The position numbers and the translations under genes were made by a program. Shown in pieces: positions 12,901 through 15,900 of a DNA stretch of 35,214 nt (positions are counted from its first letter, which is position 1; the number at the start of each line of letters is the position of its first letter). Under the pieces are notes generated by a model. That model did not search any database. It was not told the DNA's origin and was given only the letters and a program-made list of their open reading frames with translations. Source of the DNA: Octopus bimaculoides (lineage: Eukaryota); NCBI RefSeq assembly GCF_001194135.2, contig NC_068984.1:9870102-9905315 (forward strand). Direction: 5' to 3'.

Positions 12901-15900
12901 AGTGAGGTGGCAGAACTGTTGAAGCATTGGGCAAAAGATTTCGAAGAAATTCTTCGGCTGTTTACAAATTCGTGAATGGATACGTGAAGTAATTATTTAT
13001 GGGAAAAAAAAACAAAAACAAACAAACAGAAAAAGGAGAGAAATGTGAATAAAACTTACCGCCATAAGACACAGGGAACTGAAGAACAAACCAACGAGAC
13101 CTTGAATCCACCTAAAAATTATGAATATATATAATGGATTAATTAACGAATTAATTAATTCTACAATAAAACATGGGCAGTGATTTTGTTTGATTAAAGC
13201 AACAATATATAAGACTTAAATGATAATAATAATAATAATAATAATAATAATAATAATAATAATAATAATAATAAAAATGCACCATGCATGCGTAGGTCGT
13301 TGCCAGTGCCTCCTGACTGGCTCTTCGTGCCGGTGGAACATAAAAGACACCATCCGAACGTGGTCGATGCCAGCCTCACGGCCCCAACTGGCTCTTGTGC
13401 CGGTAATACGTAAAAAGCACCATCCGAACGTGGCCTATGCCAGTGTCACCTAACTGGTTTCTGTGCCGGTGGCACGTAAAAAGCACCCACTACGTTCTCG
13501 GAGTGGTTGGCGTTAGGAAGGGCATCCAGCTGTAGAAACTCTGCCAAATCAGATTGGAGCCTGGTGCAGCCTCCTGGCTTTCCCTTCCCCAGTCAAACCG
13601 TCCAACCCATGCCAGCATGGCAAACGGACGTTAAATGATGAATAACAACAACAACAACAATAATAATAATTTTGGTACAAAGCCAGCAGTTTCGGGGGGA
13701 AGGGATAAGTCGATTTCATCAACCCAGTACTCAACTGGTACTTTCTTTATCGACCCCCAGTAAGGTGAAAGGCCAAGTGGACCTTGACGGAATTTGAACT
13801 CAGAACGTAAAGACAAACGAAATGCCGCTAAGCCGGGCGTGCTAAAGATTCTGCCAGCTCGACGCCTTCATTGATTCAAATATGGAAATATAAATTCACT
13901 GGAAGAAGAGGTTAACTAATCAGCCACCAGTACAGCGATAACCAAGTTTCTGCTTAAATTTCAACTTTGATTAGTGGTTTCAGAAATCTTAGTAAAAATT
14001 ACGGAATTCGCCCGAATGTCAAAGACAGAATTTTACTAGGGACAGCATGTCGGAGGGAAAGTTCAGAAGTATGGAGAGAGAACATGAAAGAAAAGTTTGA
14101 TGTTGGAAATGTATATATTTACATACCTAGGAAACCATCTGACGAGACGAGGAAATATTAAACCAGCAGCCAAGTATCCAACAGATGTCGGTAGAACAAC
14201 GATTCCTAAAGAAAACGAACAACGATATATATATATATATATATATATATATACATACATATACATACGAGGGTGAGTCAAAAAGTAATGCCATTTTGTT
14301 TAGGACAGGTGTAATTACCAACACAGGAACATGTATCATACATCAAAATGAAGCTGGTCCTCTGTGGATCACATCCCTACTTCTCAACATAGTCACCGTT
14401 TCTCTCAATAGCAATGTTCCACCTTCGAATGAGAGCATGTATCCCTGCCCCGTAAAATCCTGTTGACTGTTGTTTGAGCCACTTTTTCACTACAGTTTTC
14501 ACTTCCTCGTCACTGGAATAATGTTTGCCTCTCAAACCCCCTTTCGTGGCGCAGAAGAGATAGATGATAGTCTGAAGGCGCTAAATCTGGTGAGTGTGGA
14601 TTCAGGGAAGAAGTGGCTCATGCACATACCCAAAACTTATTCGCCAACAGAAAACTCTTACAGCTCCAAAGAAACAACCAGAACACACACACACATACGT
14701 CCAAATAATGTACACATTGGTACAACTGACACACGCATATACACACAAACATACAAACACACCAACGAGGATCACAAAGCATACACTAACACTGAAAGAA
14801 ACATACACTCTTACACTTGCACACACGCAAGATATTCATAGACCGCTCACGGTCAGTTTCTCATTTGCTCTCGTACTTATGAAATCTTTTTCCTTCTCTA
14901 ATTTGTGGTCATCTTAAGGTACTTCTAACATAGCTTATCGCAGACTAAAACGTATTTCTCTCTATTTCCCGTTTATTCATGTTTTTATAATTTCCTTCCA
15001 TCTGTCTTTTTTGAAGAAGTGCTAGAGCTCGAAATATCAAAAACATTTCTCCTTTCTTACCTTTCCCAACGTGTAAATCTACATTACGCTCTTGATTTTT
15101 ACCTGGCCATTCTTGTTACCCGTTCGTCCACCCGTCTGTCTATCTGTCTGTCTGTCTGTCTGTCTGTCTGTCTGTCTCTCTCTCTCTCTATTTCTCTCTC
15201 TCTCTCTCTCTATCTTATAATCAATTTTGTTTTGTACTTCGTTACTTGTTATCCCCATTGATAAATTTACCGTTCTGTCAGCCATCCACCCTTCTGTCTG
15301 TCCGTCTGTCAGTTCACCTGTCTATCTGTCTGTCTGCATACTACGTGCTTCTTCATAGTTGTAATTTACCAAGTTCCATTCAGAAGATATTGGTTAATCC
15401 AAGACTGTCATTGAGTTATAATTAATTACCCAAGGTGGAGAAGCAATGAGAATCGATCCCGTAACCACGAGGTTACAAAGCAAACTCTTTAACAACATAC
15501 GGTTTAAGCTGAAATGGTGGTATTTAATCCTACTTACCAAGTTGCCAAGTGGAAGCATCTATCAGTTCAAGAAGTCTTATCGGTAAGAACGCCAATACAA
15601 TTGAGACATCGAGATTCAGCAAAAAAATATTTACTGAAAAATGTAAGAAATTAGAAAATGAACTAATAATAAAAACAAATAAATAATATTACGGAGATGT
15701 ACTTGCATAGCAAGTGACCTGATCTGAGATCGTGTGCTGGAACGAAAACAATAAATAATAAATAATAATAAACAAATAAATGTTCATGTATTGAATGGAT
15801 GATGTTGTTGTTATTGTTGTTTAGTTTTGGATGTATCCTATTTGAGAGGAACTATAATCAAAGGTGTTTTATTTATGACGATTCTTGTCTTTTATTCCGA

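Follow-up and report, generated by a model that had tools for sequence, protein, structure and literature searches.

An octopus orphan transporter of SLC18A type without the C-domain carboxylates of VMAT2 and with a candidate replacement acid in TM1

E312 and D399 of the vesicular monoamine transporter VMAT2 are regarded as indispensable for amine/proton antiport of the VMAT type, and a conserved clade of transporters that lacks both predates the mollusc-annelid split. One member of this clade is encoded in a 35,214-nucleotide stretch of the Octopus bimaculoides genome (NCBI RefSeq assembly GCF_001194135.2, contig NC_068984.1, positions 9,870,102 to 9,905,315 of the forward strand), hereafter the window, in which position 1 is the first letter. 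The gene occupies 6896 to 32058 on the minus strand, where all exons and codons located below also lie, and its 16 coding exons specify a 459-residue orphan transporter of SLC18A (VMAT/VAChT) type with 12 transmembrane helices (TM). The locus thus raises the question of how the charge layout of an antiporter of the major facilitator superfamily (MFS) can be rebuilt once its essential TM7 carboxylate has gone, and the clade can be regarded as a natural experiment on this point. A first-pass annotation of the window sought the answer within TM7, where it proposed that the acid may have shifted deeper into the helix and that a new arginine at the luminal mouth could favour neutral, zwitterionic or anionic cargo. 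The pattern of conservation points to TM1 instead, and it is on balance probable, if only just, that the protein is a proton-coupled SLC18A-type antiporter whose TM7 carboxylate has been relocated to residue D48.

The clade is represented by the cephalopods Octopus sinensis (P0001), Argonauta hians and P0003, by two copies in the chiton Liolophura sinensis, by the annelids Owenia, Dimorphilus and Capitella, and by P0006 and P0008, which cluster with the annelid members in a neighbour-joining (NJ) tree. Counts out of ten below refer to these sequences.

Membrane acids of TM1, TM7 and TM10

Equivalences to human VMAT2 were derived by phmmer against the natively numbered chain 8ucj_A (E=1.1e-81), with which the alignment is ungapped over TM7; two independent MAFFT alignments concur. 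Exon 9 (15538 to 15633, residues 259 to 290) encodes TM7 and leads into luminal loop 7-8. Its segment N265-L-D267-V-S-I-V-L272-A-F-L-P-I-R278 aligns without gaps to N305 through W318 of VMAT2, so that N265 (AAT, 15614 to 15616) corresponds to N305, L266 to M306, D267 (GAT, 15608 to 15610) to G307, L272 (TTG, 15593 to 15595) to E312, and R278 (AGA, 15575 to 15577) to W318. The peptide and codons read by the first-pass annotation are reproduced exactly, including the exchange of E312 for leucine, the new aspartate at the G307 position and the replacement of W318 by arginine.

The loss of the TM7 glutamate is fixed in the clade, with leucine at position 272 in all ten members and with N265 equally invariant. 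The hinge proline P313 of the E-P-x-x-P motif is replaced by an invariant alanine, A273 (15590 to 15592), and the hinge retains only its second proline, the invariant P276 (P316 in VMAT2). In VMAT2, E312 binds the amines of substrates and inhibitors and serves as a protonation site. The TM7 glutamate is reported to be essential and to be kept without exception among higher organisms (PMC5940252), and outside the clade a glutamate occupies position 312 in 119 of about 138 representatives. In TM10, the second acid has been lost as well: D399 is replaced by S359 (10430 to 10432), which is serine in nine of ten members and threonine in Capitella. The clade thus lacks counterparts to both C-domain carboxylates, each of which VMAT2 requires.

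A new acid appears in TM1. D48 aligns without gaps to V41 of VMAT2. Nine members include an N-terminus, and of these eight have aspartate at this position and one has glutamate, while valine dominates it elsewhere (91 V). The D48 codon is split over the exon 1/2 junction, with the first base (G) at 31917, the last base of exon 1, and the remaining two (AT) at 27045 to 27046. The loss of D399 and this invariant new acid, two changes that seem to be linked to those of TM7, had escaped the first-pass annotation. Together with other substitutions, they make up a set that is specific to the clade: N34 to S, V41 to D or E (9/9), F135 to I or V, E312 to L (10/10), P313 to A, F334 to V or I, D399 to S or T (10/10), A425 to S and F429 to V.

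The position of D48 is suggestive on account of the internal pseudo-symmetry of the fold. An equivalence of P42 with P314 has been described (PMC5940252), and the V41-P42-x-x-P45 stretch of TM1 is the pseudo-symmetric counterpart of E312-P313-x-x-P316 in TM7. VMAT2 has V-V-V-P-I-I-P in TM1 and M-L-E-P-A-L-P in TM7, and the clade has L-V-D-P-I-L-P and V-L-A-F-L-P, as if the acid-proline pair had switched helices from TM7 to TM1. A similar exchange appears to have occurred elsewhere in the family. Among 131 sequences in which both columns are aligned, an acid at 41 is accompanied by no acid at 312 in 16 cases and by an acid in four, and the absence of an acid at 41 by an acid at 312 in 97 cases and by none in 14 (counts not phylogenetically corrected). 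Two to three of the four doubly acidic sequences look like alignment or assembly artefacts, and the 14 sequences that are acid-free at both sites mostly carry Q or N at 312. The combination of a hydrophobic or small residue at 312 with D or E at 41 recurs in another clade of spiralians (Owenia P0039 and P0084, Lineus P0111, and P0139), which is 100% monophyletic and joins the window clade with a support of only 37%. It is also found in the nematode Mesorhabditis (P0113), nested among nematode orphans with V41 and Q312, and in the amphioxus Branchiostoma (P0058). This distribution suggests at least three separate origins of the swap, and the recurrent pairing of an acid at 41 with its absence at 312 makes pseudo-symmetric relocation a testable hypothesis.

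The alternative raised by the first-pass annotation is that the TM7 carboxylate slid by five residues toward the cytosol, from E312 to D267, and still acts as the substrate and proton site, with R278 biasing the transporter to neutral, zwitterionic or anionic cargo. The D267 position is always polar in the clade, and remains so (Q or H) in the Capitella fragments P0032 and P0122, which are further paralogues; its equivalent 307 is G, S, A or T in VMAT, VAChT and portabella (prt)-like sequences. It is almost certainly not exposed to lipid, because TM7 is a core helix with nearly every position conserved in the clade. A precedent is also provided by the bacterial transporter BbMAT, in which E222 partly replaces E229, and D48 and D267 together bring the number of membrane acids back to four. 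However, the residue is aspartate in only seven of ten members, being asparagine in Owenia and Dimorphilus and histidine in Capitella, so no carboxylate is obligatory at this site. Conservation of the aspartate, which the first-pass annotation had named as a check, holds for polarity and not strictly for the acid.

Geometry argues in the same direction. The cavity-lining residues of TM7 in VMAT2 are N305, I308 and E312, which form an i, i+3, i+7 face (PMC10770148). Ideal helix geometry puts position 307 about 140 degrees away from 312 and about 200 degrees away from 305. The first-pass annotation had itself cautioned that an acid displaced by five residues might not point into the same cavity, and this is borne out. 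The BbMAT pair differs in this respect, as its offset of i-7 keeps both acids on one face, whereas the i-5 offset of D267 places it about 140 degrees off the N305/I308/E312 face. G307 goes without mention in the VMAT2 structure papers searched, and the small residues found there in the wider family (G/S/A/T/P) would be typical of a helix-packing site. That D267 takes the place of E312 is therefore unlikely judging from helical position and conservation, and the combined account of a slid acid and a cargo-selecting arginine must be considered quite improbable. An auxiliary or structural role, as a hydrogen-bonding or protonatable site, is more likely for D267.

One such role could be to compensate for the lost TM10 acid, with D267 rebuilding the cytosol-side network of N265, Y301 and S359 as a second protonation site. 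D267 follows N265 by two residues and lies as deep in the membrane as N305 and D399 of VMAT2; N265 and Y301 are invariant in the clade and S359 nearly so; and by the pseudo-symmetry of TM1 and TM7, position 307 would fall on the side of the D33 face, toward the equivalents of TM8 and TM10. The presence of asparagine or histidine in three annelids shows, however, that an acid is not strictly maintained at 267, and no partner covaries with it within the family, in which only conservative changes that follow lineage accompany D versus N or H and no charge partner is found. Compensation for D399 is accordingly ranked as unlikely, though less so than a substitute for E312.

Luminal gate and proposed mechanism

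The site of D48 is itself part of the luminal gate. In VMAT2, V41, F135, P313 and F334 form a gate layer adjoining the central site (PMC10770148), and W318 acts with V41, P45, F135 and F334 as a luminal plug (PMC11695631). The five residues V41, F135, P313, F334 and W318 correspond in the window protein to D48, I97 (26898 to 26900), A273, V294 (14195 to 14197) and R278. The arginine is kept in seven of ten members and replaced once each by N, E and Q, so that its conservation, likewise a check named by the first-pass annotation, extends to most of the clade and not to all of it. Within the family, the only changes that accompany R versus N, E or Q are conservative and correlated with lineage, with no charge partner among them.

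Arginine at the gate is neither unprecedented nor diagnostic of non-cationic cargo. Dalton et al. noted R or H at 318 in some "VMAT2 from other species", and human VMAT2 bearing W318R transports serotonin like the wild type while its binding of dihydrotetrabenazine (DTBZ) is lost (PMC10959523). Arginine is also present at 318 in the Xenopus orphan paralogues P0045 and P0152 and in the MetaClust sequence P0050. The W318R phenotype and the tolerance of N, E or Q in three members of the clade both weaken the case for the proposed bias toward neutral, zwitterionic or anionic cargo, and count further against an account in which a TM7-shifted acid and R278 act together. An ion pair between R278 and D48 that closes the gate is a reasonable idea and may form.

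Several elements of the transport machinery have been retained. D40 (31939 to 31941; D33 of VMAT2, TM1), K100 (26889 to 26891; K138, TM2) and D386 (10349 to 10351; D426, TM11) are invariant or nearly so within the clade, R151 (24273 to 24275; R189, TM4) is invariant, and the cytosolic-gate tyrosines Y378 and Y382 are kept. The TM2-3 loop carries a motif A-like sequence, G112-x4-R117-x-G119-x-R121-K122. TM5 contains the antiporter motif C (G-x3-G-P-x2-G) as G193-x3-G197-P198-x2-G201, of which G197, P198 and G201 are invariant. Both motifs are established signatures of the DHA1/DHA2 families.

On this basis, the protein would be a vesicular-type, proton-coupled DHA1 antiporter in which the coupling network of the N-domain is preserved, comprising D40, the K100-D386 pair (K138-D426), R151, the motif A-like loop and the TM5 antiporter motif. 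The essential TM7 carboxylate would have moved across the cavity to D48, which immediately precedes the PxxP motif of TM1 just as E312 precedes that of TM7. D267, a clade-specific residue buried at the level where VMAT2 has its N305-Y341-D399 network, which is dismantled here, would play an auxiliary part as a polar or protonatable site. On the luminal side the gate would be smaller and partly electrostatic, and R278 may close it against D48. The predicted consequences are a substrate outside the classical VMAT set, which would probably still be cationic or zwitterionic, an altered proton stoichiometry and insensitivity to tetrabenazine. The last prediction follows from the observation that changes at N34, F135, E312, W318 and Y433 of human VMAT2 each abolish DTBZ binding, since the equivalents of all five are changed here.

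Several points weigh against a relocation to D48. R278 and D48 do not covary, as D48 persists in the members with N, E or Q at 278. The association between positions 41 and 312 was counted without phylogenetic correction and the deep nodes of the NJ tree are weak; given the 37% support for their union, the two spiralian clades may represent a single event. Rat VMAT2 with the E313D exchange is dead, so relocation of the carboxylate is not trivially tolerated (PMC5940252). Finally, the orientations assigned to D48, D267 and R278 derive from helical periodicity, pseudo-symmetry and published VMAT2 contacts.

A more far-reaching reading is that several bilaterian lineages moved the SLC18A carboxylate from TM7 (E312-P313) to TM1 (D/E41-P42), either independently or once in an ancient event, and that the window clade is a conserved neuronal vesicular transporter loading a transmitter or modulator outside the classical VMAT set. 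This is offered tentatively and is rather doubtful as a whole. If true, an inverted charge layout combined with a neuronal vesicular role would imply that cephalopods and annelids possess a transmitter system that has so far gone unrecognised.

Gene, transcripts and clade

The gene model follows the O. sinensis protein P0001 (annotated as "synaptic vesicular amine transporter-like"), which was mapped to the window, with the exon junctions set by hand. Every intron is bounded by GT-AG, and the spliced 459-residue product is identical to P0001 at 445 of 459 positions. From high to low coordinates, exons 1 to 4 lie at 32058-31917, 27046-26839, 25386-25328 and 24316-24233, exons 5 to 8 at 22811-22719, 22345-22256, 20895-20855 and 18436-18379, exons 9 to 12 at 15633-15538, 14205-14127, 13111-13060 and 12257-12194, and exons 13 to 16 at 10440-10321, 8792-8747, 8173-8092 and 6961-6896, the last ending with the stop codon. 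Exon 9 is flanked by a pyrimidine-rich acceptor (...tttttcag) and a GTAAGT donor, and translation of the minus strand from 15631 to 15533 gives NIFLLNLDVSIVLAFLPIRLLELIDASTWQLGK.

The orthologue P0003 of another cephalopod is represented by an uninterrupted open reading frame (ORF) on contigs of about 2.6 kb from 67 sequencing-run assemblies, with the same exon 9 peptide. Contigs of this size must derive from spliced mRNAs, given that the gene extends over more than 25 kb in octopus. The coding sequence of the window aligns with the P0003 contig L001 in one piece and in the same order (nt 61-1303, 70% identity), across the junctions of exons 1 to 15. This colinearity with a cephalopod mRNA indicates that exon 9 is present in transcripts, and the possibility of a different exon 9 in cDNA, which the first-pass annotation had left open, is not borne out, at least in this related species. 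The window gene is thus intact and transcribed, the mRNA evidence coming from the orthologue of a related cephalopod. A pseudogene or decaying copy is ruled out by the intact ORF, the canonical splice sites, the strong conservation and the mRNA.

The same evidence bears on the possibility that proton-coupled amine antiport has been lost altogether, leaving a facilitator, a uniporter or a protein with a non-transport role whose TM7 changes reflect relaxed or neutral drift in a decaying paralogue. The absence of both E312 and D399, neither of which VMAT2 can spare, is what this account has in its favour. It is difficult to reconcile with the 92 columns that are invariant across the mollusc and annelid members, nearly all of TM7 among them, with the intact 16-exon ORF and with orthologue mRNA in 67 runs. 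The equivalents of D33, K138, R189 and D426, the cytosolic-gate tyrosines and the TM5 motif are moreover all retained, and loss of antiport is considered highly unlikely.

The protein clearly belongs to the VMAT/VAChT family. Searches of PDB sequences with phmmer return VMAT2 and VMAT1 at E values of about 1e-81 to 1e-83 and VAChT at about 1e-51, followed by NorA at 1e-9, and Pfam assigns an orthologue to MFS_1/Sugar_tr. An AF2 model built from a 10-sequence alignment (predicted local distance difference test score, pLDDT, 74.8; predicted template-modelling score, pTM, 0.73) has 12 long helices and a short linker helix. Foldseek ranks human VMAT2 and VMAT1 first (TM-score 0.90-0.94 when normalised to the target) and VAChT after them; the range for VMAT1/2 and VAChT together is 0.87-0.94, and NorA scores about 0.8. 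No SLC18B1/VPAT chain was found among the 30 PDB sequences at E<=0.001, a set of chains in which the presence of VPAT is unconfirmed; a structure of human VPAT has been published (PMC12049414).

Within this family, the gene appears to be a VMAT paralogue in a separate clade, and not the VMAT2 with a rearranged TM7 that the first-pass annotation had implied. Word-indexed searches with the concatenated exons and a family profile missed the VMATs, returning only ten family clusters at 90% identity and then bacterial and fungal MFS proteins. In an exhaustive HMMER profile search with P0001-P0010 over 1.84 billion representatives, the clade accounts for two 50%-identity clusters that score 770 and 634 bits, and the next match, a canonical VMAT from Haliotis, falls to 402 bits. 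Gastropods and bivalves contributed no clade member to the matches, though canonical VMATs of both groups abound in the same database. Canonical VMATs with D33, N34, V41, F135, E312, P313, W318, F334 and D399 are present in Argonauta (P0213) and Capitella (P0202), and that of Liolophura (P0203) lacks the N-terminal columns and keeps the remaining signature. The occurrence of a canonical VMAT in species that also have a clade member identifies the clade as a paralogue, which the common ancestor of molluscs and annelids already had and which has persisted beside VMAT since.

NJ trees (about 420 columns, 300 bootstraps) recover the clade as monophyletic with 96-100% support and its mollusc subclade with 100%. 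The clade was never sister to VMAT alone (0%, 0/300) and fell outside a group of VMAT, VAChT and prt-like sequences in 83% of bootstraps. Its deep placement is weak and may be affected by long branches.

A few further features of the locus were noted. Upstream of the modelled Met1, at about 32097-32059, the sequence still resembles that of the Argonauta and decapod-like orthologues (QDYIGEPAADGEH versus KEYMNDPSPNDDP), and these orthologues start with MPANEVEY. The octopus gene probably has one more 5' coding exon, and the RefSeq-like 459-residue model may be short at its N-terminus. Seven assembly gaps (runs of N), all intronic, lie at 7198-7207, 9631-9964, 16544-17451, 18548-19129, 19765-19774, 20911-21377 and 27998-28110, in sequence rich in (CA)n, (TA)n, (GA)n and (TACA)n microsatellites. 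One of them, at 20911-21377, stops about 15 bases upstream of the exon 7 acceptor. Because the model is colinear with its orthologues, all coding exons seem to be retained despite the gaps.

The introns and flanks also harbor short interspersed repeat families of about 110-265 nt, whose copies are 81-94% identical and occur in both orientations (7129-7320, 17552-17743 and 31589-31780; 3547-3810, 21430-21693 and 34313-34430; 13723-13833 and 25498-25743). Short minus-strand ORFs at 2337-2702, 20245-20556, 23216-23521 and 7361-7609 contain motifs that resemble mariner/Tc1-like transposases, such as DSAPCHTS and DNVPCH. These transposase-like ORFs have no significant Pfam match and are probably decayed transposon remnants.

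Comparison with known systems

No paper describing the clade was found in a literature search, and the SLC18 phylogeny of Goulty et al. discusses VMAT and VAChT only. Precedents exist both for orphan paralogues in SLC18A, portabella being one, and for membrane carboxylates that can change position in DHA1 transporters. The window protein is an orphan putative vesicular transporter of cephalopods with a status comparable to that of Drosophila portabella, and its annotation as "synaptic vesicular amine transporter-like" is unsuitable as a monoaminergic marker.

VMAT1 and VMAT2 (SLC18A1/A2) are the closest relatives in sequence and fold, with about 34-35% identity. The window protein shares with them the equivalents of D33, K138, R189, N305, Y341 and D426, together with the cytosolic-gate tyrosines and two motifs, PxxP in TM1 and the antiporter motif in TM5. 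It differs from VMAT2 by the exchanges of E312 to L, D399 to S, N34 to S, P313 to A, W318 to R, F135 to I, F334 to V, F429 to V and Y433 to M, and by the new acids D48 at V41 and D267 at G307. The large luminal loop 1 of VMAT2 and its C117-C324 disulfide (PMC10959523) are absent as well, as the TM1-TM2 loop is short, at about 25-35 residues, and devoid of cysteine, and C324 is replaced by D284.

VAChT (SLC18A3) shares the fold and family, with 26-27% identity and a TM-score of about 0.9. In contrast to the window clade, VAChT representatives keep the equivalents of E312 and D399 and an N-V-S-L...E-P-T-I-A-x-W signature, and form a separate clade that is 100% monophyletic in the NJ tree.

Portabella has been described as a relative of VMAT and VAChT (bioRxiv 10.1101/2021.03.20.436253). 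Its arthropod and tardigrade type of orphan is similar to the window clade in its kinship to VMAT and VAChT, its altered membrane acids and its orphan status. The prt-like group, so labelled by signature and taxon and not by comparison with the Drosophila prt sequence, includes sequences of Macrobrachium, Homarus and Hypsibius and forms a separate clade in the tree. It has T or S at 305, E312, W318, D399 and Q426, the opposite pattern to that of the window clade, as E312 and D399 are kept and D426 is lost. Membership of the window protein in the portabella group is ruled out by N265, L272, S359 and D386 and by the separate clades.

Parallels in charge are offered by animal SLC18A-like orphans that have also lost the TM7 glutamate, comprising Xenopus laevis P0045, MetaClust P0050, Owenia P0039 and P0084, Lineus P0111, Mesorhabditis P0113 and Branchiostoma P0058. 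Several of them pair a hydrophobic residue at 312 with D or E at 41, like the window clade. They differ in belonging to other clades, and none has an aspartate at 307. The Xenopus P0045 type resembles the window protein in having R at 318 and no acid at 399, and differs by Q312 and A41. Extra SLC18A-like orphan paralogues exist in non-mammalian vertebrates under VMAT1 or VMAT2-like annotations (X. laevis P0045 and P0152; Scomber scombrus P0026), and the Xenopus type, with K305, Q312, R318 and G399, is a natural W318R transporter without E312.

The bacterial DHA1 transporters BbMAT and MdfA provide the precedent for movement of charge, since an essential membrane acid can occupy alternative positions in them and support transport; for BbMAT, E222 and E229 demonstrate that DHA1 transporters tolerate the relocation of a membrane carboxylate (PMC5940252). 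In BbMAT the two sites share a helix and a face and are two full turns apart, whereas the preferred candidate in the octopus protein, D48, sits on TM1, and its TM7 aspartate at an offset of five residues.

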